Below, in pieces: positions 9,195 to 48,900 of a stretch of 64,000 bases of DNA. A program made the position numbers and the translations under genes. The DNA is from Pseudomonas aeruginosa PAO1 (GTDB taxonomy: Bacteria; Pseudomonadota; Gammaproteobacteria; Pseudomonadales; Pseudomonadaceae): NCBI RefSeq assembly GCF_000006765.1, contig NC_002516.2. The stretch is one strand, 5' to 3'. Under the pieces are notes generated by a model. That model made no database searches. It had not been told where the DNA came from and saw only the letters and a program-made list of their open reading frames with translations. Every line of letters begins with the position of its first letter. Positions within the stretch are counted from its first letter, which is position 1.

Positions 9195-9577
9195 CTTCAC
9201 TCCAGGCAAAACTCGAAGGTACCGGCCAGGCCGGCGCAAACGCCCGCAACTTTATAACAATGCGCGTTAAGAAGTTGTCATGATTTGAAAAACAGTCTGC
9301 ATCCCAAGGCTCTTGACTGGAAGACGAGAGTCTGTGTGCAGCACCCTGGGCAACACCTAACCAATCGAAAGGTTCTAAGCAGCCGGGAAAAACCACCGGA
9401 CATCCGTGCAAACGACCATTCGTCGGCAATTCTCATTCAAATCGGATTTCTTATAACCAATCCGCATAGGCCTACCGGAGCCCTCATCTCCCCCGCAAAG
9501 GCACGCCATTCCGGGCCTCGACGCGTAGCCGGCAGGCCTTTTCGCATAGCCTGACGGTTTTATAACAGCGGCAGAGC

Positions 9578-12976: not shown

Positions 12977-14353
<1,377 letters not shown>

Positions 14354-27728: not shown

Positions 27729-28252
27729 CCGAAGAACGCCTGCTGCGCCGCGACGAAATCCCCCTGGTCTGGGAGATCGACCGCAGCGAAGTGATCGGAC
27801 ACCTGTATTCCGTCGAGGCCGGCCAACTGGTGCTGCGCCCCGAGTTCTACGACATGCGCGGCTGGCCGGAGGGCGAGGCCGAGCACTACACGCCGATCCT
27901 GCTCGACTGCTTCGACCGCGGCGGCTGGTTCCTCGGCCTGTTCGACCAGGGCCGCCTGATCGGCGCGGTAGTCCTCGACCCACGCCGCCTCGGCCCCGAG
28001 CGCGACTGGCTGCAACTGAAGTTCCTCCACCTCAGCCACGCCTACCGCCGCCGCGGCCTCGGCGCCCACCTCTTCCACCTCGCCGCCACCCAGGCCCGCC
28101 ACCTCGGCGCCAGCGCGCTCTACGTTTCGGCTACGCCGTCGCAGAACACGGTGGATTTTTATACGAGACTCGGATGCCGGCTGTGCATGGAACCGGATGA
28201 GGAGTTGTATCGGTTGGAGCCGGAGGATGTTCATCTGGTGTTCAATCTATAG
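27725..28252 (+). CDS. GNAT acetyltransferase (175 aa)
   Basis: ATGA overlap; LHLSHAYRRRGLG acetyl-CoA motif; NTVDFY. Confidence 0.9.
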   Translation: MTEERLLRRDEIPLVWEIDRSEVIGHLYSVEAGQLVLRPEFYDMRGWPEGEAEHYTPILLDCFDRGGWFLGLFDQGRLIGAVVLDPRRLGPERDWLQLKFLHLSHAYRRRGLGAHLFHLAATQARHLGASALYVSATPSQNTVDFYTRLGCRLCMEPDEELYRLEPEDVHLVFNL

Positions 28253-28308
28253 TCTGATGCTGAGTCTCGTTGATAATCAGCAGTGCAAATAGACTTCAAG
28301 GAATGGAA

Positions 28309-29898
28309 ATGTACAAAGCTCTCGCTTTTCTCCTGTTAAATACATTCATCGCCGTAGTGCATGCGGAGGAAGGCTGGGAGCTTTCAGTTTCAGGACCAGC
28401 CCCTGGACAACCTGAACACGTGCCATATCCAGATAGGCGACAACCCTCGCTCGAAGCCGCTTGCGCGGCCAGCGACAGGTACTATATAGATAGCAATCTG
28501 AAGGGTGGTCACGTAGTTCTAGGGTACATCAGCAGAAAAACACTTATAGATGCCCGATACAATTCATTTTTTTGCAGCATCAGCATATTCAGAAAGTCTC
28601 CGCTAGCAGCTACATCCGGCACTGCTACCTACGGAAATCCTAACTGGTGAGGGGCCTCCGGCACGGCTGTAAACGTTACTCAGGCTCCTCCAACTGGCTG
28701 CCCATACAACCTTTTCAATGGCCGGTACGAGTGCCCCACTGACGTCTCCGATCGAAAGAACGCGGGAATCCCCAACGAAAACGGATGCCAAGGCCCCTCA
28801 TCTTTCCAGGGAAACCCTATAAATGCCAGTATCGGCAATAAATTTCAACGTGAAACCGATATAGATCCGTCGCACTCCCCTCTCCAGTTCGAGAGATACT
28901 ACAACAGCGTTACCGGAATGTGGACGAACACCTTCCAGGAAGGCTTAAAAATAGTAGGCGAAAATATTTCCCTATCTCTACCCGATGGTCGTCAGGAACT
29001 ATTCAGGCTGACTGACGGCGCAATATCGTCCGACGCAACGACGGGTACACTTTCAAAAGACCAGGCAGGCTGGAGGTATGACTATAGGGACGGAACCAGC
29101 TCACTTTTCGATGTCCAGGGCCGGCTTATCCAGAGGAAAGTCAGGGGGCAGGTCATCACGATAACCTATCCGAACCTCTCCACCACCAAGGCTAAAGATG
29201 GGTTCGGAAACACCCTAACCGTTTCCTGGAACGCAACGAAACAACCCTACCTCGTCGATTACAACGGTTCCCTGAAAGTGGAATATCTATATGACGGGGG
29301 CGCCAGGCTGGTTTCGAAGAAAACCACGTCCCAAGGACTCAACCGCACCCGGAAGTATCTCTATGCTGACAGTGGCAATGCCGGGTTAATGGTTGGAATC
29401 ATCGACGAACAAGGCACGCGTTACGCCACCTGGACCTACGACAACCAAGGCCGCGCCATCTCCAGCGAACACGCCAACGGCGCCGAAAAGGTCTCCCTCG
29501 CCTACAACGATGACGGCTCCACCACCGTCACCAACGAATACGGCAAGCAGGCCACCTACCGCTTCCAGGTGATCCAGGGCATCAAGCGCATCGTCGCCAT
29601 CGAAGGGCAACCCTCGCCCAACTGCCCCAGCAGCAATTCCACCTTCACCTACGATGACCAGGGCCTGCTCACCAGCAAACGCGACAACAACGGCAACCTG
29701 ACCACCTACCAGTACAACGCCCGCGGTCTGGAAACCTCGCGCACCGAGGCCGCCGGCACTGCGCAGGCGCGCACCATCACAACCGACTGGCACCCGACCC
29801 TGTTCCTCCCGGTGCAGGTCAGCGAGCCCGGCCGGATCACCCGCTACCAGTACGACGCCGAGGGACGCAAGACCGGCGAGACCGTCACCACCCGCTGA
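28309..29898 (+). pseudogene. Signal-peptide Rhs/YD protein, N-half (DUF6531-like), interrupted by one in-frame TGA at 28648-28650
   Basis: The frame is otherwise open from MYKALAFLLLNTFIAVVHA through GNPINASIGNKFQRETD...FERYYNS to YD repeats ending TGETVTTR*. Confidence 0.85.
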
Positions 29899-29912
29899 CA
29901 AGGACGACACCC

Positions 29913-31151
29913 ATGCGCATCCCCCCCATACTTCCCCCGTCTCGGCGCCCTCGCCCTGGCCTGCGCCCTGGCCCTGCCCGCGCAGGCGGCCGAGCGCGCC
30001 TGGAGCTACAGCTACAACGCTCTCGGCCTGATCGAGCGCGCCGACGGTCCGCGCACCGATGTGCAGGACGTCACCCTCTATGCCTACGACAGTCGCGGCA
30101 ACCTGACCCAGGTGACCAACGCCCTCGGCCAGGTCACCCGCCTCGGCGACTATGACGAGCGCGGCAAGCCCGGCAGCATCACCGATGCCAACGGCGTCAC
30201 CAGCAGCCTCGCCTACACCGGCGTCGACGGCTGGCTGGCCTCCGTCAGCACCGCCGGCAGCACCACCCGCTTCGACTATGACGCGGTCGGCCAGATCACC
30301 CGCGTCACCCGCGGCGACGGCAGTTGGCTGAGCTACGAATACGACGACGCACGGCGCCTGGTAGCGATCGGCAACAACCTCGGCGAACGCCTCGAATACG
30401 ACGTCGACACCAAGGGCAATCGCACCGCCCAGCGCATCAAGGACGCCAGCGGCAGCCTGGTGCGTCAGCAGCAATGGGCCTACGACGAGCTTGGCCGGCT
30501 GCTCCGTGCGGTCGGCGCCGGCGGCCAGACACGCAGCTTCGCCTACGACCTCAACGACAATCCGGTCGGCGAAACCAACCCGCGCCAGTTCGCCCACAGC
30601 CAGGCCTTCGACGCCCTCGACCGGCTGGTCGGCCAGAGCGATCCCCTCGGCGGCAAGACCCGACTCGCCTACGACGCCCAGGACAACCTCACCGAGGTCA
30701 AGGACCCGCGCGGCGTCACCACCCGCTACGAATACGACGGCCTCGGCAACCTGACCCGACTGGTCAGCCCGGACAGCGGCACCACCACCTTCGAGCACGA
30801 CGCCGCCGGCAACGTCATCCGCCGCACCGACGCTCGCGGTACGGTCACCGAGTATCGCTACGACGCCCTCAATCGCCTGATCGAGCGCCACTCGCCGAGC
30901 GACCCGAGCCTCGACGTACAGTACCGCTACGACCTCACCGCCGACGGCAACAAGGGCATCGGCCGCCTGGGCTCCATCGAAGGTGCCCGCGACAGCCTGG
31001 TGTACCGCTACGACGAGCGCGGCAACCTGGTCGAGCAGGTACGCAGCATCCGCCTCGACCAGCAGACCCTGCTCGACCGCGTGACCTACCGCTACGACGC
31101 GGCCAACCAACTGCTGGAGATCGGCTACCCCTCCGGCCTCGCCATCCGGGA
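29913..31151 (+). pseudogene. Second signal-peptide YD-repeat Rhs gene, +1 frameshift in a C7 tract and 3'-truncated by a TIR element
   Basis: Removing one C at 29921-29927 gives MRIPPYFPRLGALALACALALPAQA-AERAWSYSY..., in frame with the YD ORF; no Rhs core or toxin remains. Confidence 0.85.
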
Positions 31152-31374
31152 AAAGGGGACAGATTTATTTTCCCTACTCTAGTTTTGTCTAGTGCTTATA
31201 TTTCTCATTTCTACTGTATACCACCGCCGATCTTACCCACACTGAACCACGTAAAGCGGATAGTTCAGTAAAACCACTCGCCTCTGCCTAGGCATCGCGG
31301 AGCCTCCTTACGGCGTCTGCACTGGAGCCTCCCTGCTCAGAAATCAGGGTAGGGAAAATAAATCTGCCCCCTTT
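31152..31374. mobile_element. Miniature TIR element copy 1 (223 bp) with a decayed Y1/RAYT-like transposase 5' end
   Basis: AAAGGGGACAGATTTATTTTCCCTAC (31152-31177) and its near-perfect inverted copy (31349-31374); minus strand TAAGGAGG-7nt-ATG(31295) MPRQRRVVLLNYPLYVVQCG*DRR. Confidence 0.85.
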
Positions 31375-31481
31375 ATTCGCTCAACCCGCATCTTGCCACC
31401 GGCCATCAAGTTAACACGTGACTGAACACGTCCAGGAACTTGAATAGAGGCTTCAGCAGTATTCGCAGTTCCTTTTGCATC

Positions 31482-32087
31482 TTATGCCAATTGCAAAAAT
31501 CTATACTTCCAATAATCCATACCCTCTAAAACCCAATACCTCTCCCTATCGGGTACTAAATGGCAAAAATCCGAACACTTAGCAAGCCAGTCTGAGTAAG
31601 CCAATTCTTCATGCGCCCGATTAAAGTCCATATGCATGTAAATTTTGCGATCGAAATTCACATAGAACATTGGAAGCCTAGAGGCAACAGTATTAGCGTC
31701 ATGAAAGTAGCTTGCACTCAACTCAACACCAGAAAGATAGTAACCTTCAATTCTTCCATGCAAAGACTCGCTCATATCAAGCCCGCACACAAACATATCT
31801 TTTAGGTCTTGCCGCGACAACACCCACCGTTCCCCCGCCCTCAAATATTTCAAAAAATTCTCAGCAGTAAGTTTAAGCACCCCACCTCTAAACGTCATGC
31901 ATGCCGACGCATATTGCTCCTGAGTTATATGACCCTTATCAAGGTATGCACGATAGTCCTTCTCCGCATCCAAGATGAAGTTGAATTTATCATCCACAAC
32001 CCAGAAGCACGCACCAGAATGAACAAAAAAGCATATATTTTTTTCACCCCCCCACAAATCATCAGCTAACAATTGCCACTGAGTCAT
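31482..32087 (-). CDS. AT-rich 201-aa protein, candidate orphan immunity protein
   Basis: Intact ORF in the cdi orientation; ATG overlaps the stop of a short upstream remnant. Confidence 0.75.
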   Translation of the reverse strand: MTQWQLLADDLWGGEKNICFFVHSGACFWVVDDKFNFILDAEKDYRAYLDKGHITQEQYASACMTFRGGVLKLTAENFLKYLRAGERWVLSRQDLKDMFVCGLDMSESLHGRIEGYYLSGVELSASYFHDANTVASRLPMFYVNFDRKIYMHMDFNRAHEELAYSDWLAKCSDFCHLVPDRERYWVLEGMDYWKYRFLQLA

Positions 32088-32129
32088 CTCCCAAACTCCT
32101 TCAAAAACTCGTCATGAGAGTATAAGCCA

Positions 32130-32353
32130 AAAGGGGACAGATTTATTCCTCCTACTCTAGTTTTGGCTAGTATTTATATTTCTCATTCCCACCGTATACC
32201 ACTGCCGATCTTACCCACACTGAACCACGTGAAACGGATAGTTCAGTAGAACCACTCGCCTCTGCCTAGGCTTCGCGGAGCCTCCTTACGGCGTCTGCAC
32301 TGGAGCCTCCCTGCTCAGAGAATTAGAGTAGGGAAAATAAATCTGTCCCCTTT
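32130..32353. mobile_element. Miniature TIR element copy 2 (224 bp)
   Basis: Same TIRs and interior as copy 1; remnant reads RQRRVVLLNYPFHVVQCG*DRQ; start codon mutated to AAG. Confidence 0.85.
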
Positions 32354-32360
32354 ATGGTCT

Positions 32361-32604
32361 GACATCCTGCTGGGCCGAAATAATTGCCCATTTGGCTTCT
32401 ATTCCTTTTGCAGAGCGGTTTTTCCTTGCAGCCATCGACCTCCTGCCGCTTCTTCTCCTCCTGCCAATGACTGAGGTAGTTGTGTTGGGTGGCATTCCTC
32501 GCCACCCAGGCTCCCGTCTGCAAGCTCTTGGCGTCCGCATCGCCCTGCGTCGAAGCCGCCAGCAAGCCGATCAACTGCGAACTCATGGTCAGCAGGCCCT
32601 TCTT
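32361..32604 (-). pseudogene. Orphan duplicate of the cdiA pre-toxin region (around TQHN), with a 2-nt deletion
   Basis: Near-identical to cdiA 34710-34955; ends 7 nt from the element 2 TIR. Confidence 0.9.
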
Positions 32605-32782
32605 CTCCAGGCAACGCATACGTTGCCCCGGCGAGCGACCCGCCAGGGATGGCGGGGCCGGAGGTTCAGGACTCTGCGGAAGTAGCGAAAGGGAGGTCAG
32701 TGCTCTTCTTTTAAAATCGAAAAAGTAAATTTTTAAAAAACAGGAAATTACTGAACGGGGAAGATCTACCTACCTTTTAGTT

Positions 32783-32856
32783 CTAGAGCAGTGAAAATAA
32801 ATCCGCCCCCTTTATGCTTCCAGAAACTGGGTAGGGAAAATAAATCTGCCCCCTTT
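32783..32856. repeat. Two solo TIR ends of the same element family
   Basis: CTAGAGCAGTGAAAATAAATCCGCCCCCTTT (32783-32813) and GTAGGGAAAATAAATCTGCCCCCTTT (32831-32856). Confidence 0.8.
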
Positions 32857-32871
32857 ATCCGCTCTGTCAAA

Positions 32872-33351
32872 TCAGCCTTTAATCGCACCAAAATTTTCCG
32901 GAATAAATCCTTTAGGCCAAATCGTTCTATCATTATATATGGCACCCCGAAAAACAGCGCCATCTATCCTCGCTACATCAATATTAACATCTCGCAAATT
33001 GGAATTTATGAAATTAGAACCGCCTATATCAGCATTTTTTAGACTAGCCATGGAAAGATCTGCCCCTGAAAAATCAGCATAAGCCGCCATAGCATCCACA
33101 AGTTTTACACCTTTCATTATAGCATCAACAAAACTTGCATTCATAAGCGCTGCACTATTCATTACAGCACCACCCAACAGAGCATGATTAAAAGAAGCGT
33201 TCCTCAAATTTGAGGCAGTAAAATCAGCCTCTGAAAGATCTAAACCATCAAAAATTGCCCGATGCAGCTCTAGCCCACTTAAGTTTGACTTAGCAAAATT
33301 ATCCAAAGGCAAATCCAGCTCTTCACCAGTTTCAAAAAAAATAGTTATCAT
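32872..33351 (-). CDS. Pentapeptide-repeat protein (159 aa), candidate orphan immunity protein
   Basis: A(D/N)FxxAxLxxAxF repeats; ATG 33351 overlaps an upstream TGA. Confidence 0.85.
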   Translation of the reverse strand: MITIFFETGEELDLPLDNFAKSNLSGLELHRAIFDGLDLSEADFTASNLRNASFNHALLGGAVMNSAALMNASFVDAIMKGVKLVDAMAAYADFSGADLSMASLKNADIGGSNFINSNLRDVNIDVARIDGAVFRGAIYNDRTIWPKGFIPENFGAIKG

Positions 33352-33408
33352 TTGTTCCCCCAATCCACTTGATCTATCTTCAGCTCAGACACAGGTTTGG
33401 TTTGGGAA

Positions 33409-33607
33409 AAAGGGGACAGATTTATTTTTCCTACTCTAATTTTGACTAGTGTTTATATCTCTCATTCCCACTGTATACCACTGCCGATCTTACCCACACT
33501 GAACCACGTGAAGCGGATAGTTCAGTAAAACCACTCGCCTCTGCCTAGGTCTCGCGGAGCCTCCCTGCTCAGAGAATTAGAGCAGGGAAAATAAATATGT
33601 CCCCTTT
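33409..33607. mobile_element. Miniature TIR element copy 3 (199 bp)
   Basis: Same TIRs and interior; lacks 25 nt deleted between GGAGCCTCC direct repeats. Confidence 0.85.
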
Positions 33608-33658
33608 ATGCTGCCCGAGGCCAGTATTTGAAAAAGCAAACGATGTATGTTTTAAAAA

Positions 33659-33913
33659 CTACGACTTCAAACCCTTCAAGTGTTTGAATGGACCTTCCTC
33701 TAAGTCAAACCCCATATCCAGGGCTAATTGTACAGCCTCGCGATATTCCTCATCCGTGATAGATACATCATATTCACAAATATGGTCACACAGAACTTCA
33801 AAAGCCAGACTTTCCTCATTGTATCCAACATAGTCTAGTGCTCCTTGAAGCAGCGTAGACTCTAGCCGCCCCTGGAATCTCTCCCCAAATTTGACAATAC
33901 GATCAGCGTACAT
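33659..33913 (-). CDS. cdiI: Cognate CDI immunity protein (84 aa), MafI-like
   Basis: Small acidic ORF starting 7 nt after the cdiA stop; ALDYVGYNEESLAFEVLCDHICEYDV. Confidence 0.8.
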   Translation of the reverse strand: MYADRIVKFGERFQGRLESTLLQGALDYVGYNEESLAFEVLCDHICEYDVSITDEEYREAVQLALDMGFDLEEGPFKHLKGLKS

Positions 33914-33920
33914 AAAAGAC

Positions 33921-36900
33921 CTATTTAATGGGCTTATAAGGTGGGATAGGTGCGTTGTCGGGGAAGGCTGTGATCACCTTTCCTGTAGCGGGCTGATAAA
34001 CAACGCGCATACGAACTCCATCACGAACCTCATAAGCAACCCATTTAGCGGGATCACCCTTGCTTGTATAAACCCCACCAGTTCCTGTTTGGGCATACCA
34101 TTTGGTACTAGGGGACGTCGCAATATCACCAACCTCGTGAACTATCTTATCTGCCGACCAGTTTTGAGGGAAAACTGTCTTCCCTGCCTGCCCCGGCCAC
34201 AAATGGCCACCACTCCCAGGTTTGTCGCCATACAAAATATGCTGTTTAGCTTCGTGGGAAAGAATATCGACATAACCTTTACCTCCCCCACCCAGCCGAC
34301 CCAAATCCCCCACTGCCCCAAGCTGCGAACTCATACTACCGGAAACAGGTGACTCCGCAATCGCGTTGACCAGGTTCTTGGCTGCTGTTGGCAGCTTGGC
34401 GGTTATCTGCGCGCCACCTTTCACTGCCGTCAGAACGCCAACAAGTTCCGCAGCGAACCTACCGCCCTCGACACCAGCTGTGACCGAACCTTGCCAGCCG
34501 GCATCCTCGTATGCCTGGGTCAAGAATGCGGCGCGCTCCTCCAGCCCCTTCAGGTAGTTATCGCCAAATTGCTGCCGGAACTCTGGCGAAGTGGCCAACT
34601 GCTCCAGAGCTGCATAGGTTTCCCTCCAGTTCTTGACCAGCTCATAAACACCCACTGCGGTTTCAGCTGTCGAAAGACCGATGCCTCCTCCAACACCTAC
34701 GACGATACCGACATCCTGCTGGGCCGAAATAATTGCCCATTTGGCTTCTATTCCGGTTTTGCAGAGCTGTTTGTCTTTGCAGCCATCGACCTCCTGCCGC
34801 TTCTTCTCCTCCTGCCAATGACTGAGGTAGTTGTGTTGGGTGGCATTCCCCGCCACCCAGGCCCCCGTCTGCAAGCTCTTGGCGTCCGCATCGCCCTGCG
34901 TCGAAGCCGCCAGCACGCCGATCAACTGCGAACTCATGATCAGCAGGCCCTTCTTGTCATCGATGGGCAGGCTGGCGTATTGCTTGGCGAGGCTATCCAC
35001 CAGCGCCTCGTTGACTCCCGCAGCCAGGGCTCCGGTACGGAAATCGCCACCGACCGCTTCGGCGGCCAGACCTCCCATCAGGGCGTGCAAGCCGATCTTG
35101 CCGAGGCTGCCGTCGTCCAGCACGCCATGGGTGGTGTCGCCAATCAGCTTGAAGCCGTAGGCCGCAAAGGCATTTGCCAGGCTGTTTTGCAACGCATCGC
35201 CCAGGCTGCCCTTGCCGCCCAGCGCCCGGTCCAACAGCACCGAAGTACCATTCTGCAGCAACTGGTTCGAGGTGAACTGGCCCACGCCTTGCCAGGTGCC
35301 CAACCCTGCGGCGGGCGCCACGGCCCCGGTGTTCGGTAGAGCGGTCGAGGTGCCGGTCTGGGTCGAGGTCCATTTGTCGTAGACGCCGGCAGTCAGCCCC
35401 GCAGTCGTGCCAGCGACTACATAGCCCCTCAGCGCATCGCTGGAGGTCACGTCCTTGACGACATCCCCCAGGTTTCCCCGGTTGTTGATGGTGCTGATCG
35501 CTCCATTGCTGGCCATGCCCATAGCCACGGCAGTTCCAGCTGCATTCGCCCAGCCGGCGGCAGCTGTTCCTACTGCTGTACCGGCCTGGACCATTGCAGT
35601 GCTACCGGCAGCAGCCATCATGCTTCCTGAGCCCGCCCCCACTCCCGCCATCGATCCCAATGCCGCACTCGCCGCACCCGCCGTGAAGTAGGCCACAACG
35701 ATCGCTATCGCCAACTGCGCGCCGACGCCCAGCCCGGAGTTGCTGTACTTCCAGCTGTCATGCAGTTCCTGCACGCGCCGCCAATCCACATCGCCGCGCT
35801 GCTCCATCTGCTTCAGCCAGGCCAGTTGCGGATCCGCCTGCACCATCGCGTCGATGGTCTGGCTCACGGTCTTCTGGTCGATGTGCTTGAGGTCGATCTT
35901 CAGCCCTTCCACGGCCTTGATCGCCAGATTCCCCTGGGCCACGATCTGGCTCTGGCGCACGGTTTCGTCGGTCTGGCCCTTGCCCTTCGACGACTGCCAC
36001 GCCAGGTCGCCCTTGCTCTTCTCGTGGCTTTCCTGGTGCAGGTCCTTTACCGCCTCGAAGGTCACCGCGCCGCCGCTGACGATGGCCAGGTCGTTGCCCG
36101 ATTCCAGCTTCGCGCCCTGGTAAGTCTGGTCGCCGCCACTGAGCAGGGTGAGGTCGCCGCCGCTGGATATTTGGCTGCCCACTGCCGTCACATCGGTGAT
36201 TTCGTCGCGCCGGGTCTTCTTGCTACCGAAGCTGCCTTTGCTCTTCTTGTCGTAGAGGTAGTAACTGCTGTCGTTCGCGGCCAGCAGCTCCAGCTTGTCG
36301 CCGGCCACCAGGTAGGCTTCGTCGCCGGCGCTGGCCTGGCTCGCGACCAGCCGCAGGTCCTGTCCGGCATTGATCGCCAGGTCGCCGCCAGCGTCCACGC
36401 GAGTGGCCTGCTGGGTGATCTTGTCGTCCTGGAAAGTGACCTTCTTGGTCTTGCCATAGGCATGCTCTTCGTTGGCAGCCGCGACCAGGCCCACATCGCG
36501 ACCCGCCTCGAATGTCACGTCGCGACGAGCGTCGATGCGGCTGCCCACGACGCTGATATCGCGTCCGGCGCTGACGCTGATATCGCGCCCCGCCACGACC
36601 TCGGCGCCCATCTGGGTCGTCTGGGTCTGGTATGCCTGGCTTCCTGCCGTCCAGCCCCGCTCCGCTACCGCAGCCGAAACCAGGACATCCCTGCCGCCTT
36701 GCAAGGCGAGGTCGCCCTTGCTGTCGATGACACCGCCAATATTGGCTACATCGCGTCCTGCCGAAACGGTCAGCTTCTGCGCAGCCTCGATACGCGCGGC
36801 GCTATCGGCAAATGCCTCAGTGGTACCGGTTCCCCTGTAGGAGGACTGGTGCTGGGTCACCGTCCGTTCATTGATGACGTCTCCGGTAAGGGCAGAGAGG

Positions 36901-39900
36901 CTTACCTCGCGCCCGGCAATGATGCCGCCCTGGTCATTGCGGATGGAGCCGCTGGCCAGCAGGTCGAGGCGGTTGCCGGCCTCGATCAGGCCGCTGTTGT
37001 CGATGTTGCCGGCTGTCGCGCTGAGGTCGTTCTGCGCGCGCAGGGTACCGGCGTTCCTCAGGTCCCCGCCGGTGATCAGGTTCACGTCGCGCCCCTGGAT
37101 CAGCGCGCCGTTCGGGCCCAACCGCCCCTCGGCCTGGGCCAGGTAGACCACGGGGGCGAGGACCTTTTCGCCATTCACCTCGACTTCTTCCAGCCAAACG
37201 ATATCGTGGGTCAGCGCCGCCACCTGGGCGGCGCTGAGGGTGACGCCAGGGGTCAGTCCCAATACGTCCTTGCTGGCGATGGCGTTGTCCATCAGATAGC
37301 GGAACATCGCTTCGTCGCTGTTCAATCCGGCGATGAAGCGCTGCCCCGTACGCTGGACGATCGCTTCGCGTACCAGGCGCTGCTCGTATAGACCGTCACC
37401 CAGGCGCTTCTTGCTATCGTCCGGATTGATACCCAGACCACCGAGCAGGTAGTCCGAGTTGAGGAACTGCTTCAGCTCGGTGAGCGCCGGGTTGGTCTCG
37501 ATCAGATACTTGTGGCTGTTGCTCGGTGTGGCATTGCTGGGCACGCCCTCAACGCGCGCAACCGACGGCAGGGTTTGCAACGCCGGCTGCCCAACCGGAG
37601 GCTCGGCAAGAAGGGCGCTCCGCTCTTCGAGGCGAGGCAGGCTGCCCTGAGCCCTAACGGCCGAAGGCAGTGCCTGCACCGACGACTGTTCAGCCGGCAG
37701 ATCGGCAAGGATGCTGCCATTGCCACCTGGACTGGAGACTACCCCCTCTACACGCACTGTCGAAGGCGAGGCCTGGACCGTCGCCTGCGCACCCTGCCAA
37801 TTGGCGAGAATAGTTCCATTCCCATCGTGACCGGGCACTGTGCCTTGAACATGATCAGACGCGGGAAGGCTTGAGAACGAGGGTAGACCACCGCGCAGAT
37901 CGGCGAGGATGACGCCATTGCCGCTGTGACCCGATGCATTGCCCTCGACGAGTCCACCCAGTCCCGTGGTCGCCTGGTGCTCACCGGCCTGGAAACGGCC
38001 AGTGTTTCCCCCGTCGCCCGAGATTGGCGCGGAAGCCCGTAGCGCATCGATAGCCTCAGCTACCCGGCCTTGATAGGCGGAACCGGCAAGCGAGGTGACC
38101 CGATCATCGCCGACACGACGCGCCTGGGTACTCCAGCCACTTGCGCCACTGCCTGTCTGTGCGGATACAGATACGCCATGGCCGCTCTGGGTGAGATCGC
38201 TGGCGGATTTCAGAGCACCACTTGCCTGGTTCACCTGGGCTCCTTGGGACGCCAGGCGGAAGAGCCCATTCTGGCCTTGAGGCAGGCTGAAGCCCGGCAG
38301 GGTGAGAGGATTGATCTGTTGCCTTGCCAAATCCGCTGGCAGTTGACTCTTCAGAGTCACTACGGCGCTCGTCGTGCTTGAAACAGCTATGTCCTGATGA
38401 GGTAACTGGGTTTCCTGAACGGCCTGAAATCCCTGTAGGACAGAATTATTGAAACTCTCCGCAGCATTCACCGTTACACGACCGCCAGCTTGCACGACAG
38501 CACCAACCGTTGAGTTCGCCCCTTTGTTAATCGTCAACTCATCGAGAGGAGCCAATCCCTTAAGTAGATCTGGAATAGCATCCGTTTTTTTCGATGAATA
38601 ATTCGGCGCCGGTATTCGTCCAATAGCCTTATTCCAGCGATCTGTGTCCGGATACTCAACATCTAAGGTACCGAAGTACAGGTGCCAACCCGGCCCACCA
38701 TTTTTCCCGTTTCCATGAATGACCTCCAGCGGAGAGACTTTTTCATTAAAATTCTTGTCGAAATAATGAATATTCGGAAGTCTCCCCCCTGTGCTCGCAT
38801 ATCCCTCCCCATAACTGGGATCGTTGACAGCGTTATACGCCAATATGCGCATAAGCAATTCTTCGCCAAATTTACTCGGCGGCGAATAAACGCCCCTGAC
38901 CGCATATTCCCCTAACGCATAACCTTTGTTTTCGAAATTACTCAGAGATAGCGTGGCGTCTCTTACAGCACTTATATTAGAAGCAATATTCTGCAGGCTT
39001 GCACCTACAACAAGCAGATCTCGACCAGCCGTAATTGAAGCAGCGGCAGAAGAATCTCCCAATGTAGACTTATATTCCCTGATCCAGACAAGCTCGCTCG
39101 AAGACCTAGTTTTTCCCCACCTCTCAGAAAGCTGACACCCCGTACAGCGGACGCCAATAGCGCTATTCTGCAAGTCACCTTCAATCTCTAGAGTTTCCCT
39201 TCTATTGAGAAGTGAACTCACGGAGAAACGCATATCACCTGTGCTCTCTAAATTCCCGGAAATGTTCTCCAAGCGATTTGCCCAGCCCCCCGCATCGTCG
39301 CGGGCGATATCCAGCCTGCCGAGGCTGTACACATCCCCGTAGAGGTTGGTGATGTCGCCGGCGCGCAGGGTCATGTCGGCGCCACTGAACAGCAACCCGC
39401 GCTCGTTGAGCAGGGCGGGCGCGTTCAATCGCAGGTTGCCGCCGCCGCCCAGGGTGCCGTAGTTGTTCAGGCTCGCGGCGCTGGCCACGAGGTCGCCGGC
39501 AGCGGTGATCCGCCCACGGTTGACCAGCAGGTTGCCGGCGCCAAGCGTGACATTGGCGCCGCCGGCGAGGCTGGCGGCATTGCCGAGGTCGAGGCTGGCG
39601 GCGTTCAGGGCGAAGTCGCCGAGGCTGGTGGCGCGGCCGTTGCCACGGTAGCCGCCGCTCAGCTCGAGTCGCAAGCTGCCGTTGCTGGCCAGCAGGCCGT
39701 CGTTGCTCCAGTCGCCGCCGCGGCCAGTGAAGGACTGCACCGCCAGCAGCTTGCCCTCGGCCGTCTGGCGGAAGGTGCCGATGTCCAGGTTCAGGCGTCC
39801 GGCTTGCAGCACGCTGCTGTTGGTCCATTCGCTGGCACGGATGTCCAGCAGGCCATTGGTGGTCAGTTCGCCGCCGGCGCGGATCACCTGCCCGGAATCC

Positions 39901-42900
39901 AGGCCGAAGGTGCCGTTGCCAGTGTGGAGGATGCGCCCGCCGGCGTTGGCCAGGCTGCCCAGTTGCAGGTCGAGGTCCTGGTTGGCGCTTTCCAGCACGC
40001 CGTAGGCGTTGTTCAGGTCGCCAGCGACCAGCCGCGTGCTGCCGCTGCGGCCGAGGGCGCGCAGGCTGCCGCCGCTGTTGTCGATCGCGGCGGCGCGCAG
40101 GTGCAGCTCGCTCTCGCTTTCCAACTGGCCGAAGCGGTTGGCCAGCGCGCCGGCCAGGCTGAAGTCGATGCGCCCGGCGCCGACCTTGCCGCCCTGGCCC
40201 GCCGCCGCGCCCTGGTTGAGGAAGCGCTGGCCGTCGAGGCTGAGCAGGCCGCTGGCGTAGAGGCCGCCGCCCTGGTTGTCGAAGTCGGCGGTGACGATGC
40301 GGTTGTCGCCGCCCAGCGCCGAGAGATGGCCCTGCTGGTTGCGCACGCCTTGCCCGGCGCGAATCTCCAGCGACTGCGCCTGGGTGACGCCGGCGCTGTT
40401 GTCGAACAGCCCGGTGACCAGCTTCAGCCAACCCTTGGCGCTGTTGAGCACGCCGCCGGCGCCGTTGTCGAGGCTGCCGCTCTGCAGGTCGAGGTTGCCG
40501 GCCCGGCTGTCCAGGCGGCCGGCCTGGTTGTCCAGCGCGCCACCGATACGCAGCCGGTTGTCGCCCTGGGCCTGGAGCGTGCCCTGGCGGTTGTCCAGGC
40601 TGCCGGCCTGCACCTCGAGGGCGCCGGCCTGGCTGAAGATCAGGCCGTCCTGCTGGTTGCGCAGGGCGCCGCCGCCCAGGCGCAGGCTCATGTCGGCCTG
40701 GCTGGCGAGGGTGCCGGAGGCGCTGTTGTCGAGGCTGCCGGCGCTGATCTCCAGCAGCCCCTGGCTGACCAGCTTGCCGCCGCGGTTGTCGACGCTGGCG
40801 CTGCGCAGCAGCAGGTCGCCGCCGCTGGCCAGGCGCGCCGCGCCGGCGTTGACCAGGGCGCCGCCGAGGATGGCGTCGAGCCGGCCCTGGCTGATCAACT
40901 GGCCGTCGCTGTTATCCAGGCTGGCGCCCTTGAGCAGCAGGCTGCCGCCGTTGATCCGGCCGCCGGCGTTGTTCAGCAGCGTATCGTCGCGCTCGAAGCT
41001 CAGCGCGCGCTGCGCCGAGACCAGGCCGCCCTGGCCGTTGTCCAGCTTCCCGGCGATGCTCAGGGTCACGTCGCTTTCGCCGGAGACGATGCCCTGGGCG
41101 TTATCCAGGCTGGCGGCGTCGATCCGTTGCGCGCCCTTGCTGACCAGCGCGCCCTGGCCGTGGTTGTCCAGCGCGCCGCCGAGGCTGATGGCCAGCTCGC
41201 CGTCCTTGCTCGAAAGGGTGCCGCCGGCGCTGTTGTCCAGGCTCCCGCCTGTCACCGTCAGGCCCTGCCATCCGGAGAGCAGGCCGGCGCCGGCGTTGCC
41301 CAGCGCGTCGGCGTCCAGGCGCAGTTTCCCGGCGCTGATGATGCGCCCCTGCTGGCCGTTGTCGATGCGCCTGGCCAGCAGCTCGAAGCCCTGCTGGCTG
41401 TAAATCTCGCCGCCCTGGCGGTTGTCGAGGACGTTCAGCCGCTCGATGCTCAGCGGGCCGCGGGCACTGATCAGGCCGCCCTGGTTGTCCAGGTCGCCGC
41501 CCCGCAGGTCGAGACTGACGCCGCGCTCGCCAATCAGCCGGCCCTGGCGTTGCACCAGGCGCTCGACCGTCAGGCGCAGGTCGCCCCGGGCGGAGATTTC
41601 GCCGCCGTCGGCGGAATCGACGCGCCCTGCCGTCAGTTCCAGTTCGCCGTCGCTGGTGAGCAGGCCGCCACGGTTGTCCAGGTTGGCGGCGCTCAGGCGC
41701 AGCGACTGCTTGCCACTGAGGGCGCCGCCACGGTTGTCGAGGTCGGCGCTGCTGACGTCCAGGACGCCCTGGCTGATCAACTGGCCACCCTCGGCGTTGT
41801 CCAGCGCGCCAGTGGCGACGCTCAGGCCGGCGTTGCCGGAGAGCAGGCCCTTGCCGCTGTTGTCCAGCGAGGCGCTGGCGAGCGTCAGGCGGGCGCCGGA
41901 GACGGTGCCTTCGGCGTGGTTGTCCAGCGCGCCGTCGACGCGCAGGTCGATGCCGGCGCGACTGGCCAGGGTGCCCTTGGCGCTGTTGTCCAGGCGAGCG
42001 GCCGCGATGTCCAGGCCGGCGGCGCCGGAGATCACCCCGGCCAGGCTGTTGTCCAGGGCCTGGGCGATGCGCAGGGTCAGGCTGTCGGCGCCGATCAGGC
42101 GCCCGCCGCGGTTGTCCAGGCTGGCGGCGGCGAGGGTGAAGGCGCGGTCGCTGGAGATTTCCCCGCCGGCGCCGTTGTCCACCGCGCCGAGCTGGCGCAG
42201 CAGCAGCGCGCCGGGCGTGGCGATCAAGCCGCCGTCGCGGTTGACCAGCGTGCCGCCATTGAGGTCGAGGGTGACGCCGGTTTCGCTGACCAGAACGCCG
42301 CCTCCGCGCTGGTCGAGGCCTTTCAGGTTGGCGTCGAGCAGGCCCTTGGCGCTGACCCGGCCCTGCTGGCCGTTGTCCAGCCGGGCGGCCACCAGGGTGA
42401 TGCCGGCGTTGCTGCCGATGCCGCCGTTGCGGCTGTTGTCCAGTACGCCGGTGCGGATATCCACCGCTCCCTTGGCGCTGATCACGCCGGAACGGCTGTT
42501 GTCGAGGCTGGCGCCCTTCAGCGTCACACCGGCATCGCTGAGCAGCCTGCCGCCCTGGTTGTCCAGCACGGCCTGGCTGGTCAGCGCCAGCGCACCGGCG
42601 CTGGAGAAGGTCCCGCCACGGTTGTCCAGGCGCGCGGCGCGCGCCGTCAGGCTGCCTTCGCTGACCAGCGCGCCGCCCTGGTTGTCCAGCACGCCGCCGA
42701 GGCTCACGCTCAGGCTGTTCTGGCTGTCGAGCCGACCGCCGTCGCCGTTGAACAGTTCGCCGCCGTCCAGGCTCAGGCCGTCGCGCCCGGCCAGCACCCC
42801 CTTGGCCTGGTTCAGCAGGCGCTGCACGGTGAGGCGCAGGCCGCTGTCGCCGATGACCTTGCCGCCGCGGTTGTCCAGTTGCTCGCGGGCGTTCACGGCG

Positions 42901-45900
42901 ACCTTCGAGGTGCTGGAAATCTCGCCGGCGCGGTTGTCGACCTGCCGCGCCTCGATAGCGATGCCGCCATTCGCGGCGATCAGCCCGGACTGGCTGTTGT
43001 CGAGCGTGTCGGCGCGAAGGTCCAGGCTCCCCTGGCTGACCAGTTCGCCGCCTTGCTGGAGCAGCGTACCGACCGCCGCCTCCAGCACGCCTCTGGCGGC
43101 GATACGGCCTTGGTTGCCGTTGCTCACCTGGTCGGCTACAAGCTCCAGGCGGCCTTCACTCACCAGGCTGCCTTGTTCGGCGTTGTCCAGGCTGGTCACG
43201 CTGATACGGGCATCACCCTTGCTGCCGATGGTTCCCGCACGGTTGTCCAAGACCTGAGACTCGATGGCCAGTCCGTCGGTCGCCAGGACCTGCCCCTTGA
43301 GACTGTTGTCCAGTGTCTTGGCGATGCGCAGGGTCAAAGCTTCGCTGCTGATCAGCCGCCCGCCCTGATTGTTCAGTGTGTTGGCGGCGAGGGTAAAAGC
43401 ACGGTCGCTGGATATCTCTCCGCCGACGCTGTTGTCCACCATGCCGAGTTGGCGCAGCAGGAGCGCGCCAGGCGTTGAAACCAGACCGAGGTCGTGGTTG
43501 TCCAGGGTGCCACCGTTGAGGTCGAGGGTGACACCGCGCTCGCCGACCAGCGAGCCTCCCCCCTGCTGAAGCAACCCTTTCAGGTTGGCGTCGAGCGTAC
43601 CCTTGGTGCTGATCCGTCCTTCCCGGCCGTTGTCGACCAACCCGGCGACCAGGGTGACGCCCGTATTGCCGCCAATGGATCCCTTCTGACTGTTGTTCAG
43701 GGCTCCGGTACGAATGGCCACAGCCCCTTTCGCACTGACCAGGCCCGCACGGCTGTTGTCGAAGCCAGTGCTGTTCAGGGTGGCTCCAGCATCGGTCACC
43801 AACCTGCCACCCTGGTTGTTCAACTCGCCCCGGCTGGTAACGAGCAGGCTACCCGCACTGGAGAAAGTCCCCGCCTGGTTATTGACCTGGTCGGCCTTCA
43901 CTGTCAGCGACTCTTCGCTGACCAGTGCACCGCTCCCCTGGTTGTCCAATGCACCACTGAGCGTTACATCCACCAGGCGTTGGCTGCTGAGCAGGCCGCC
44001 ATCGCCATTGAGCAGTTCCGCGCCGTCCAGGTGCAATCCATCGCGACTGGCGAGCACACCCTTGGCCTGGTTCAGCAGGCGCTGCACGGTTAGGCTCAGC
44101 TCACTGTCGCCGATCACCTTGCCCCCCCGGTTGTCCAGTTGTTCCCGGACAGCCAGAGCCACCTTGGCCACGCTGGATATTTCCCCACCGCGGTTATCGA
44201 TCTGGCGTGCCTCGGCGGTGACCCCGCCATCGGCGCTCACCAGGCCGCCATTGCGGTTATCCAGGCTATCGGCGTCGAGAGTCAGCGTCCCCTGACTGGC
44301 CAGTTCTCCACCCTGCTGCTCCAGGGTGCCAACCGTGACCTGCAGATCGCCCTTCGCGGCAATGCGCCCCTTGGCGCTGCTCACCTGCTTGGCGGTCAGA
44401 TCCAGGGCGCCTTCGCTGACCACGCGGCCTGCCTCGTTCTCCAGGCGGTTCACCCCGATGTGTGTATCGCCCTTGCTAGCAACGATGCCGCTATGGTTGT
44501 CGAAGACGAGTGCAGCGACATCCAGCCCTCCGCTTGCGGAAAGAACGCCTTGGAGGCTGTTGTCCAGTGCCTGGGCGATGCGCAGGGTCAGGGAGTCGCC
44601 GCTGATCACGCGGCCACCCCGGTTGCTCAGCGCGGTCGCGGCGAGGGTAAAGCTTCGATCGCTGGAGATCTCGCCACCGCCACTGTTGTCCACGACACCC
44701 AGTTGCCGCAGCAGCAAGGCTCCAGGCGTGGCGATCAGGCCCTGAGCACGGTTGACCAGTTCTCCCCCGCGCAGATCGAGCGCGATGGCCGTATCGCTGA
44801 CCAGCCTGCCGCTGCCCTGCTGATCCAGCCCCTTCAGGTTGGCATCGATCGCACCCTTGGCAGTGATCCGGCCGTTCTGGCTGTTGTCCACCAGGTCCGC
44901 GACCAGCGCGAGCCCGGCACCGCTGCCTATGCCGCCCTTCTGGCTATTGTTGAGGCTGCCAGTACGGATCTCCGCGGCCCCCTTGGCGCTGACGATGCCG
45001 CCCTGGCTATTGTCGAGGCTGGCGCTGCGCAGGACGGCACCGGCGTCGGTGACCACCCTGCCCCCCTGGTTGTTCAACGCACCCTGGCTGGAAAGCGACA
45101 AGGTCCCGGCGCTGGAGACTGCACCGCCCTGGTTGTCCAGCCGACCGCTCTTCACGCTCAGGCGTCCCTGGCTGCTCAAGCTGCCTGCCTGATTGCCCAA
45201 TACGCCGTCCAGAATGACGTCGATGCTTTGCTGGCTGCTGAGCAGGCCGCCGTTGCCATTGAACAGTTCGGCGCCATTCAGGCGCAGCCCATCACGACTG
45301 GCGAGTACCCCGCCGTCCTGGTTGAGTACCCGTGGCGCGGCGAGGCGAAGTCCGCTATCGCCGATGGCCTTGCCGCCTCGGTTGTCCAACTGCTCGGCGA
45401 CGTCCAGTGTCACCTGGCCCGGGCTGGCGATTTCGCCCGCACGGTTGTCGATCCTCCGGGCGGAAACGGTCAGGTTGCCATCAGCACTGACCAGACCGCC
45501 GCTGCGGTTGTCGAGGCTATCGGCCTCGAGCATCAGCGCACCCTCGCTGCTCAATTCGCCACCCGCCTGGTTAAAGGCTGTCACGCTGGCGTGCAGGTCA
45601 CCCCTGGCCGCGATCCGTCCCCTGACACTGTTCGCTCGCTCGGCAGTCAGTTTCAGACGACCTTCGCTAAGCAGGTCGCCGTCATCGTTTTCCAAACGGG
45701 ACACGTCGATATCGACGGCGCCCTTGCTGCCGATGGAGCCACTGCGGTTGTCCAGGGCAAGCGCCCGGATATCCAGGCCTCCGGTGCCGGAGAGAACACC
45801 TTCGAGGCTGTTGTCCAGAGCCTGGGCGATGCGCAACGTCAGTACACCGCCGCTGCGCAGGCGGCCACCCTGGTTGGTCAGCGCGGAGGTGGTGAGTGTG

Positions 45901-48900
45901 AAGGCTCGGTCGCTGGAAATTTCCCCGCCGCTGTTGTCCACCATGCCGAGTTGGCGCAGGAGCAAGGTTCCAGGCGTGGCGATCAGGCCCTGAGCGCCAT
46001 TGGCCAGGGTTCCCTCGTTCAGGTCGAGTATGATGCCGGCATTACTGACCAGCCGCCCTTTGCCCTGCTGATCGAGTCCCTTGATATTTGCGTCGATCAT
46101 GCCTTTGGCAGTGATCCGACCTTCCTGGCTGTTATCCACCTCAGTAGCAATCAGGCCGAGCCCGTCATTACTGCCAAGATTGCCTTTCTGGCTGTTGTTC
46201 AGAACCCCGGTATGGATCTCCGCCGCAGCGTTGGCACTGATGATCCCTGATCGGCTGTTGTCCAGGCTGGCGCTGGTCAGGCGCAGGCTGGAGTCCGTCA
46301 CCAACTTGCCGCCACGGTTGTCCACCGCCTCCTGGCTGCTCAGTCTCAGCGCACCGGCGCTGGACAGAGTGGCGTCCTGGTTGTGTATGCGCCCGGCGCT
46401 CACCGTCAGGGTACCGTCGCTGAGCAGCGCGCCCTTGCCCTGATTGTCCAGCACGCCGTCCAGAGTGACCTCTATATGTCTCTGACTGCTGAGCAGTCCG
46501 GCATTGCCATTGAACAATTCGGTACCACTCAGGCGCAGCCCATCGCGGCTGGCGATTACTCCCTTGTCCTGGTTGAGCACGCGTGGCGCGGTGATGCCCA
46601 GACCACTGTCAGCAACGACTTTGCCGCCACGGTTGTCCAGTTGCTCAGTGAGATTCAGCGTCGCCACGCCCTGGCTGGCAATCTCGCCGGCACGGTTGTC
46701 CACCTGCCGGGCATCGATGACCACACCTCGGTTGCCGGCGATGCGACCAGCGCCGTTGTCGACTTTGTCGGCGTCGAGGGCCAGCGCGCCCTGAGTCGTC
46801 AGCTCTCCCCCGTTCTGCACCAGCGCACCGAGTTTGGCACGCAGTTCATCCTTGGCGACGATACGCCCCTTGGAGTTGTTCGCCTCATCGGCCGCCAGCT
46901 TCAGGCCGCGTTCGGCGATCAGCGTGCCAGCGTCGTTTTCCAGGCGGGTCACACCGATATCGATGGCGCCCTTGCTGCCGATGGAGCCACTACGGTTGTC
47001 CAGGACGAATGCCTGGATATCCAGACCTCCGGCGCCGGAGACAATCCCCTCGAGGCTGTTGTCCAGGGCCTGCGCGATACGCAAGGTCAGGGCTCCACCG
47101 CTGAGCAGGCGTCCACCCTGGTTGTTCAACGCGGAGGTGGCAAGAGTGAACGCGCGGTCGCTGGAGATTTCCCCACCGCTGTTGTCCACCACGCCGAGTT
47201 GGCGCAGAAGCAAGGTGCCAGGCGTGGCGATCAGGCCTTGAGCGCGATTGACCAGGCTTCCCTTGTTCAGATCGAGCGTGATGCCGGTATCGCTGACCAG
47301 GCTGCCCCTGTCATGCTGGTCCAACCCTTGGAGAGCCGCATCGATCGCACCCTTGGCAGCGATCCGGCCCGCCTGGCTGTTGTCTACCCGAGCGGCGACC
47401 AGGGTGAGTCCCGCATCGCTGCCGATACTGGCTTTCCGGCTGTTGTTCAGGTTGCCGGTACGAATCTCCACGGCCCCCTTGCCACTGATCGCACCGGCCT
47501 GGCTGTTGTCGAGGCTGGCGCTGCTCAAGCTAAGTCCGGCGTCGCTCGCCAGTCTGCCGCCCTGATTGTTCAGGGCGCCCTGGCTGGTCACTGCCAATGC
47601 CCCTGCGCTGGATAGCGTACCGCCCTGGTTGTCGAGCCAGGCTGACTTCACCGTCAGGAAGCCCCGGCTGTCCAGGCTGCCGGCCTGGTTATCGAACGCA
47701 CCGGCCAGGGAGACGTCGATACCCTTCTGGCTGGACAGCAGGCCCCCCGCGCCGTTGAACAACTCCGTAGCACTCAGGCGCAGCCCATCGCGGCTGGCGA
47801 GTACCCCCTTGTCCTGGTTGAGCACGTGCGGCGCGGTGATGCCCAGACCACTGTCACCGACGATCTTGCCGCCACGGTTGTCCAGCTGCTCAGTGAGGTT
47901 CAGCGCCACCACGCCCTGGCTGGCAATCTCGCCGACGCTGTTGTCCACCTGCCGGGCCGTGATGTCCACGCCCTGGTTGCCAGCGATACGGCCAGCGTTA
48001 TTGTTTAGGATGCCCAGGTCGAGAGTCAGCGAGTCCTGACTGGTCAGTTCTCCTCCCTTCTGGCTCAGCGTGCCAACCTTGGCATGCAGGCTACCATTGG
48101 CGGCGATACGCCCCTTGGAACTGTTCGCCTCATCGGCTACCAGCTTCAGGCCGCGTTCAGCGATCAGTGTGCCAGCGTCGTTTTCCAGGCGGGTCACACC
48201 GATATCGATGGCGCCCTTGCTGCCGATGGAGCCACTACGGTTGTCCAGGACGAATGCCTGGATATCCAGACCTCCAGCACCGGAGACAATCCCCTCGAGG
48301 CTGTTGTCCAGGGCCTGCGCGATACGCAAGGTCAGGGCTCCGCCGCTGAGCAGGCGTCCCCCCTGGTTGTTCAACGCGGAGGTGGCAAGAGTGAACGCGC
48401 GGTCGCTGGAGATTTCCCCACCGCTGTTGTCCACCACGCCGAGTTGGCGCAGGAGCAAGGTGCCAGGCGTGGCGATCAGGCCTTGAGCGCGATTGACCAG
48501 GCTTCCCTTGTTCAGATCGAGCGTGATGCCGGTATCGCTGACCAGGTTGCCCCTGTCATGCTGGTCCAGCCCTTGGAGATCCGCATCGATCACACCCTTG
48601 GCGGCGATCCGGCCCGCCTGGCTGTTGTCTACCCGAGCGGCGACCAGGGTGAGTCCCGCATCGCTGCCGATACTGGCTTTCCGGCTGTTGTTCAGGTTGC
48701 CGGTACGAATCTCCACGGCCCCCTTGCCACTGATCGCACCGGCCTGGCTGTTGTCGAGGCTGGCGCTGCTCAAGCTAAGTCCGGCGTCGCTCGCCAGTCT
48801 GCCGCCCTGATTGTTCAGGGCGCCCTGGCTGGTCACTGCCAATGCCCCTGCGCTGGATAGCGTACCGCCCTGGTTGTCGAGCCAGGCTGACTTCACCGTC

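Follow-up and report, generated by a model that had tools for sequence, protein, structure and literature searches.

The repeat copies at positions 31152-33607 of a 64-kb stretch of the Pseudomonas aeruginosa PAO1 chromosome (the whole of which is called the window below) are decayed miniature derivatives of a TIRYT, a tyrosine transposase gene flanked by inverted repeats, and they lie in the array of orphan toxin and immunity cassettes that follows the cdiA gene of a contact-dependent growth inhibition (CDI) locus. In Pseudomonas, the family to which they belong is mainly confined to polymorphic-toxin/immunity arrays, above all downstream of cdiA, and, as judged from sequence comparison, its elements mark many points where such arrays differ between strains. 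The copies are probably non-autonomous derivatives of a 795-bp TIRYT element that were spread in trans and act as breakpoints and portable homology. TIRYTs were described by Di Nocera, De Gregorio & Rocco in 2013 as tyrosine transposases that resemble the RAYTs (the tyrosine transposases associated with repetitive extragenic palindromes, REPs) and are bounded by long terminal inverted repeats, not REPs, the units being called TIRtrons and the repeat motif being GGGGWSAS (PMC3733652), and they form subclass 2.1 of the TnpA-REP-like Y1 proteins, with a C-terminal helix-turn-helix-like extension (Quentin et al. 2018, PMC6006769). The class being already named in the literature, the present element is a further member of it; the kind of element is known, and the new part is its residence at the cassette boundaries of polymorphic-toxin arrays. 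The literature searched, a set without Allen & Hauser 2019 (J Bacteriol), contained no link of Y1, RAYT or TIRYT transposases to polymorphic toxins.

The copies and solo ends in the window are as follows.
31152..31374, minus strand: mini-element copy 1, 223 bp, with both inverted repeats, a Shine-Dalgarno leader and a broken transposase remnant.
32130..32353, minus strand: mini-element copy 2, 224 bp, with the internal deletion and stop of copy 1; start codon gone.
32783..32856, minus strand: two solo left-end repeats without a partner end, the one at 32783-32813 degenerate and the one at 32831-32856 with 1 mismatch.
33409..33607, minus strand: mini-element copy 3, 199 bp; deletion and stop as in copies 1 and 2, plus a further 25-bp deletion; start codon gone.

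The 26-mer terminal repeat, which here reads GGGGACAG and fits the TIRYT motif GGGGWSAS, has seven matches in the window at up to three mismatches, every one within 31152-33607, and none in 100 shuffles of the window. A first-pass annotation, made from the letters of the window alone, had described three copies, two solo ends and inverted repeats lacking a target-site duplication, and this description holds. The three copies are co-oriented, 199-224 bp long and 90% identical as the mean over alignment columns; their inverted repeats reach about 33 nt with a complementarity of 88-97%, and the solo ends, which are also present in the related locus L078, are oriented like the 3' (plus-strand) ends of copies 1-3. 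No direct repeat flanks any of the three copies, and flank logos built for 127 distinct copies of related loci show no target-site duplication; only A/T-run extensions of the repeat are conserved in these flanks, and no empty site is available for defining the target. All element ends read GGGG(A/G)CAG, and those of distant relatives read GGG(G)TCAG. Whole mini-elements and tiny doublets of inverted ends fold into long hairpins (z -3.8 to -5.5); single repeat ends fold no better than shuffles and are not self-complementary. An Rfam scan of 28000-35000 gave nothing relevant.

On the minus strand, a strong Shine-Dalgarno sequence precedes the transposase frame in copies 1 and 2, the opening codons of this frame are kept in all three copies, and the start codon is retained by copy 1 alone, being gone from two of the three. 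The remnant frame corresponds to the N-terminus of the full-length transposase known from other strains; the transposase-like start and the Shine-Dalgarno sequences of the first reading are confirmed. The remnants of all three copies have one large internal deletion and one in-frame stop in common, and at least seven copies of the 224-bp class, counted over the window and L078, share both features with unrelated cassettes between them. The P. aeruginosa mini-elements form two classes, each with its own common internal deletion: the 224-bp class is found in cdiA2 arrays (the window and L078), and a class of roughly 180 bp in cdiA1 arrays. Each class lies between unrelated cassettes and has therefore multiplied after its decay, as had been proposed from the common stop alone.

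The full-length parent was found by a similarity search of plasmid records in L001 (NZ_CP116719.1), a 24-kb P. aeruginosa plasmid record that is actually a CDI orphan array and carries 18 matches to the terminal repeat. Three elements of 795 bp are present in it, all with perfect ends of 26 bp and with a 230-aa open reading frame (ORF) annotated as "transposase" between them, and the inverted ends of the parent elements extend over 26-35 nt (at 14159/14953 among others). The 230-aa ORF matches the Pfam family Y1_Tnp (E 7.6e-14) and scores 75.6 bits against NCBIfam REP_Tyr_transpos, just under the cut-off of 80, and 27.7 bits against transpos_IS200, below the cut-off of 55; the HUH histidines and the catalytic tyrosine are invariant across 31 homologs. 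The best fold match of its AlphaFold model (pLDDT 76) is 4er8, the E. coli REP-associated tyrosine transposase bound to a REP hairpin (E 7e-7, TM 0.71), followed by the TnpA structures of IS608 and ISDra2. The model has three extra C-terminal helices of lower confidence, and the protein matched no Pfam helix-turn-helix family at E <= 0.01. The window copies correspond to the left ~159 bp and the right end of the parent, with 87-88% identity over these parts. The parent has ends identical to those of the mini-copies together with intact catalytic motifs, and its transposase appears to be intact. No full-length transposase gene lies within the 64-kb window; many P. aeruginosa strains have one at their other CDI locus. 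A Y1_Tnp gene bounded by the same repeats thus exists, and these data support the earlier proposal of a non-autonomous family derived from a Y1 (IS200-superfamily, RAYT-like) transposase gene. A Tn3-derived miniature element, a candidate prompted by the GGGG start of the repeat, was dropped because the parent encodes a Y1 enzyme.

A repeat scan with an exact pattern and one genome per species gave 69 blocks, of which about 55 belong to Pseudomonas and its close relatives. By a tally of these blocks, 28 contain or adjoin a homolog of cdiA or of a CDI toxin, and 152 of the 257 repeat ends of Pseudomonas-type blocks are located in them; the complete chromosome of P. nitroreducens TX1 has just two matching blocks, which are adjacent and contain cdiA. 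In P. aeruginosa, the transposase lies in the orphan array 3' of cdiA1, by an exoT-type gene, in all 24 contigs read; these transposases are co-oriented with cdiA1 and often present in 2-3 copies. Homologs of the P. fluorescens group (72-76% identity) are found just downstream of cdiA or of orphan cdiA fragments, and further contexts include type VI secretion system (T6SS) effector islands with VgrG (L030) or DUF2169 (L039) and arrays of small ORFs without a family. The expected enrichment at cdi loci was borne out, the copies being strongly concentrated there and not randomly scattered. Where a locus has cdiA as well, matches to the transposase or its remnant are co-oriented with cdiA in 66 of 67 cases, over about 17 independent arrays; the sole copy found in the opposite orientation (L079, 9899-10136) lies with its neighbouring cassettes as an inverted duplicate. 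Paired copies, 190 in all, fall into size classes of about 75-125, 175-225 and 775-800 bp. Downstream of cdiA, there is roughly one element copy per cassette boundary, and a copy follows each main toxin-immunity module examined within about 10-500 bp.

Several records showed further arrangements of the element. In L100 (8001-9795), where a P. carnis-type CDI array has its distal end by leuA, two full-length elements stand in tandem with 390 bp between them. The P. aeruginosa PLSDB "plasmids" L001, L002 (NZ_CP137494.1, 1794 bp, "circular") and L107 (NZ_CP137521.1, 2630 bp, "circular") consist of CDI cassettes and element copies only, and the L002 record stops exactly at an element end; the three records could be artefacts of assembly caused by the repeats, or real small circles made up of cassette and element.

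The array in the window belongs to the PAO1-type PA2462 (cdiA)/CdiI locus of P. aeruginosa; it is read as such because its 5627-aa CdiA and 84-aa ORF match the published description of the PA2462 locus of PAO1, which has an 84-aa CdiI (PMC4725963). The features around the copies are the following.
33921..50804, minus strand: cdiA, PA2462-type, 5627 aa, with an EndoU-fold C-terminal toxin domain.
33659..33913, minus strand: cdiI, the cognate immunity gene, 84 aa.
32872..33363, minus strand: pentapeptide-repeat ORF, an immunity-like cassette, 163 aa and intact (Pentapeptide E 1.7e-19), between copy 3 and the solo ends.
32361..32607, minus strand: orphan stub of a conserved cdiA region, 247 bp, 96-100% identical to 34710-34958.
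31482..32087, minus strand: 201-aa ORF, an immunity-like cassette, intact and without a Pfam family, between copies 2 and 1.
31382..31477, minus strand: 96-bp stub, homologous (87%) to the sequence with which the C-terminal toxin region starts in the main cdiA of strain L078.
28768..31151, plus strand: remnant of an Rhs gene with DUF6531 and RHS repeats, in two ORFs, converging on the CDI array.

The order 3' of cdiA is therefore cdiI, copy 3 (whose start lies 51 bp from the cdiI stop), the 163-aa ORF, the solo ends, the 247-bp stub and copy 2, and then the 201-aa ORF, the 96-bp stub, copy 1 and the Rhs remnant on the opposite strand. Three of the six element ends adjoin cut toxin or Rhs sequence, fewer than the five of six counted earlier. 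They are both ends of copy 1, of which the left end cuts the 96-bp cdiA C-terminal stub and the right end lies 4 bp from the point where the Rhs core is cut on its 3' side, and the 32353 end of copy 2, 7 bp before which the 247-bp stub is cut. The other three adjoin untranslated flanks of intact small ORFs. A connection to Rhs genes had also been drawn from this locus; copy 1 does adjoin a cut Rhs sequence, and the link amounts to a single incidental junction, at the array's far end.

Beside these features, cdiA has a low-GC patch (0.47-0.53) at 38200-39200 within otherwise 65% GC sequence, which may be a horizontally exchanged internal domain, and its translation (33921-50804) contains several long near-identical internal repeat blocks with units of roughly 350 aa. 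The Rhs remnant starts in another low-GC stretch (28200-29400, 0.47-0.53), which also holds a 126-aa ORF without a family (28270-28650). A look-up through the neighbouring acetyltransferase for strains with an intact Rhs gene returned PAO1-like genomes only, and the GC skew across the window is too weak to give the replication direction.

Strains L077 and L078 have a longer version of the window array, in which four additional cassettes separate the cdiA stub from the 201-aa ORF and a Barstar cassette follows this ORF. Copy 2 of the window is near-identical to copy B of L078, and copy 1 equals copy C except at two positions; the sequences of the window and L078 part at two places, one 7 bp beyond the left end of copy 2 and the other 4 bp beyond the right end of copy 1. 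On the window side, both junctions consist of truncated coding sequence, and the window form is therefore the derived, deleted one. In cdiA1 arrays, an identical element has different right-hand neighbours among strains, and a 1.1-kb module composed of a nuclease domain, an immunity gene and a mini-element is the tip of the main cdiA in one strain and stands behind another element in a second strain, with element ends on both sides. Over seven pairs of P. aeruginosa arrays, 19 of 44 non-element boundaries of homology blocks are no more than 15 bp away from an element end, where about 2 would be expected, and most of the remaining ones lie at the conserved/variable junction of cdiA, the classical recombination point. 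The cut points take varied positions in the toxin region (in two cases the stop lies 130 and 333 codons further on), which ruled out site-specific recombination at a pre-toxin motif. The first-pass annotation had named random scatter of the copies, the lack of a transposase with the same ends and contiguous flanks in other strains as grounds for giving up its proposal; none of the three was encountered. At some element ends of L078, the outermost 11-13 bp are duplicated in tandem as a short "stutter" that includes 3-5 bp of flank, and truncated 15-20 nt end fragments are joined straight to cdiA-derived sequence; the stutter and fragment sites are at 4540-4560, 4690-4712, 9470-9500 and 10780-10800.

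Based on these comparisons, a probable course of events was proposed for the formation of the arrays. Internal deletion of the 795-bp TIRYT element gave rise to "mini-TIRtrons" resembling miniature inverted-repeat transposable elements (MITEs), and the full-length transposase, acting in trans, would have spread them. The copies, when established, would serve as breakpoints and as portable homology. Landing of an element in or by a toxin-coding stretch, together with recombination at or between co-oriented copies, could then produce deletions, cassette swaps and orphan toxins cut at their 5' side. Relative to the L078-type array, two such deletions would have removed from the window form four cassettes and the far end of the array, the latter reaching into the Rhs gene. 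By one route, insertion in or beside toxin-coding sequence may be followed by homologous exchange between co-oriented copies, the conserved cdiA region giving one homology arm and the copy after each module the other, downstream one. By a second route, joining may be mediated directly by the element end. Both routes fit the junctions and are not separable on present data, and palindrome-provoked deletion independent of the transposase is also possible.

Several points weigh against this explanation. All of the evidence is comparative, transposition, cleavage and recombination being inferred from it, and the biochemistry of TIRYTs is uncharacterised. The homology-block boundaries are not phylogenetically independent, so that their ratio is indicative only, and homology between any two arrays must trivially end at element ends too. 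When the joined flanks of the 190 paired copies were compared with about 110 loci, no pair of filled and empty alleles was obtained, the matches being artefactual. Solo copies, a minority, stand beside unrelated genes (AcrB, pheT, a nonribosomal peptide synthetase-like gene and AbiEii), single repeats form no hairpin as REPs do, and low-GC arrays may serve as tolerant "safe havens".

The last of these points leads to an alternative account, in which a purely selfish resident MITE or insertion sequence (IS) occupies neutral, AT-richer arrays and the cut toxins result from unrelated decay. This account is tenable although clearly less probable than breakpoint activity of the copies. It agrees with the base composition of the arrays (about 42-55% GC against roughly 66-70% for the genome), with the solo copies in other accessory regions, with flank logos that show no target motif beyond A/T runs, and with the truncated orphan modules known in species without this element (PMC3150448). 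It does not readily explain why strain boundaries fall at element ends at about nine times the expectation, why both deletions in the window end at element ends, why co-orientation with cdiA is near-universal at roughly one copy per cassette, or why no simple insertion allele was found among the 190 paired copies.

Conversely, a more active part could tentatively be assigned to the TIRYT, as machinery that builds and reshuffles toxin/immunity arrays, its transposase joining modules made of a toxin tip, an immunity gene and an element to new neighbours. Such a process might involve one-ended or cassette-type mobilisation at the inverted-repeat ends, comparable in function to integrons or ISCR-type elements. 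It would account for the copy at the end of each module, the single facing direction and the junctions at element ends that lack a target duplication, as well as the presence of relatives in unrelated delivery systems, namely CDI loci, T6SS islands and the Rhs/SpvB toxins of Pseudoalteromonas and Colwellia.

Distant relatives include homologs at 40-45% identity in Pseudoalteromonas, Iodobacter, Rhodospirillum and Gallionella, which have inverted repeats of their own with the same motif. The Pseudoalteromonas homolog, which contains a stop, is located at the end of an SpvB/TcaC-Imm26 array with 12 copies of its own repeat between the genes. The Colwellia homolog (L108, 7001-14500) is followed by 14 co-oriented ORFs of 100-120 aa and lies between two SpvB/FG-GAP/RHS toxins; a quick search of this locus gave no clear repeat family. 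The Gallionella homolog is near WapI and Sel1 genes, two other distant homologs lie by toxin-antitoxin pairs, and one is in an IS-rich region. In addition, lineages that are very distant keep a 17-nt core of the repeat at 96-100% conservation, frequently in doublets and with 5-10 copies per 8 kb, for instance in a Rokubacteria metagenome-assembled genome (MAG; L067, 2191-2240 and 7925-7975) and a Coprothermobacterota MAG (L063, 4604-4760), and it occurs in the gammaproteobacterial MAGs L003, L054 and L059 and in Marinobacter (L036). These distant matches reflect either extreme conservation of a recognition sequence or binning contamination.

A structural role is improbable. The hairpins between cassettes would then stabilise transcript 3' ends or act as insulators, or they would be fragile palindromes that provoke deletions independently of any transposase. 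Such roles have been credited to REPs (PMC3733652), mini-elements and tiny doublets do fold into long hairpins, and copies stand just 3' of each immunity gene in one orientation. However, a symmetric hairpin would be indifferent to orientation, the same positions are also taken by full-length copies whose transposase genes are intact and conserved, and a consensus scan of 31000-34000 for outward promoters or terminators returned no terminator-like T-run and no promoter excess.

Very doubtful is the adaptive editing system put forward in the first-pass annotation, which would remove or truncate toxin domains and spare immunity genes: the three cut sequences of the window are indeed toxin-related (the cdiA stub, the C-terminal stub and Rhs), its 84-, 163- and 201-aa ORFs are intact, and orphan immunity genes are protective in P. 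aeruginosa (bioRxiv 10.64898/2026.09.30.755834), but genes are cut at only three of six ends, the cuts have no fixed motif, the window-specific deletion took four immunity-like cassettes as well, and intact deaminase, EndoU, deamidase and NS_2 endonuclease toxin domains directly follow the element in L001 and L072. Loss of toxin domains with retention of immunity genes is not general, an element end often standing before an intact orphan toxin in these two loci. Cut toxins beside intact immunity genes follow as a by-product from the location of the element, so that an adaptive editing function is not needed; the arrangement may be such a by-product of a resident mobile element, and the editing proposal was an over-reading.

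Understood as breakpoints and portable homology, the copies bear on an open question in the CDI, Rhs and T6SS field, namely by what means arrays of orphan toxin and immunity genes are put together, shortened and exchanged. These changes are usually put down to homologous recombination in the conserved pre-toxin region, and a dedicated element at the cassette boundaries would add a second class of breakpoints. Orphan immunity genes decide survival between attacking strains, as shown for P. aeruginosa in the preprint cited above, and the element provides a sequence handle with which immunity cassettes could be found and delimited in genomes. Furthermore, a possible biological setting is offered for the TIRYT transposases, whose family is very large (about 8,000 scored homologs per search) and has no known role.

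Repeat-delimited cassette arrays are known from integrons, with their attC sites, and from the repeat elements around the maf/tps cassettes of Neisseria. By analogy, the likeness of the present arrays to these is in architecture only, in that a short structured repeat stands at nearly each boundary in one orientation with a recombinase-type gene nearby; the enzyme class differs, and no attI-like site or promoter was identified here. With the IS200/IS605 elements such as IS608 and ISDra2, the element shares the HUH/Y1 core, the lack of a target-site duplication and a strand-biased orientation. In contrast, their ends are subterminal hairpins without inverted repeats, an organisation that the element does not have, and their transposases are about 130-155 aa long without a C-terminal extension. 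Elements of this family also insert 3' of a fixed short target sequence; in the flanks of the present copies, A/T runs that extend the repeat are the only conserved feature.

The mini-copies resemble classical MITEs in being shorter than 300 bp and multi-copy, in having terminal inverted repeats and no working transposase, in having arisen when an autonomous parent that has the same ends lost internal sequence, and in their amplification after decay. They differ from them in the absence of a target-site duplication, in a parent enzyme of the HUH/Y1 and not the DDE type, and in their extreme location bias. REPIN-RAYT systems (REPIN, REP doublet forming hairpins; Bertels & Rainey 2011, PMC3116915; Bertels et al. 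2017, PMC5581495) are approached in the transposase fold, for which 4er8 is the closest structure, in the tiny 75-125 bp doublets, and in non-autonomous copies that exceed the gene in number. A classical REP or REPIN was ruled out, as the ends are non-palindromic and the copies clustered, with 1-5 exact-match blocks per genome; the copies number tens, not hundreds, and are not dispersed. Whereas the RAYT gene of such systems is single-copy and vertically inherited, L001, L072-74, L064 and L100 each have 2-3 near-identical copies; a multi-copy, IS-like gene of this sort has also been reported for RAYT "Group 1", a likeness by description.

The closest correspondence is to the TIRYT/TIRtron. The L001 parent encodes a RAYT-related Y1 HUH transposase, of which the window copies hold the opening codons only; the gene lies between long terminal inverted repeats and not REP hairpins, and the repeat contains the GGGGWSAS motif. 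The 230-aa protein, with its modelled C-terminal helices of lower confidence, may likewise be longer than RAYTs and carry the helical extension, and the repeats occur as singles, dimers and clusters as well. The published accounts (PMC3733652, PMC6006769) give neither a link to toxin/immunity arrays nor a coincidence with rearrangement boundaries, and internally deleted mini-copies that keep a gene remnant are absent from both; by these traits, and by a multi-copy habit with 2-3 near-identical genes per array, the clade described here is set apart from the TIRYTs described so far.

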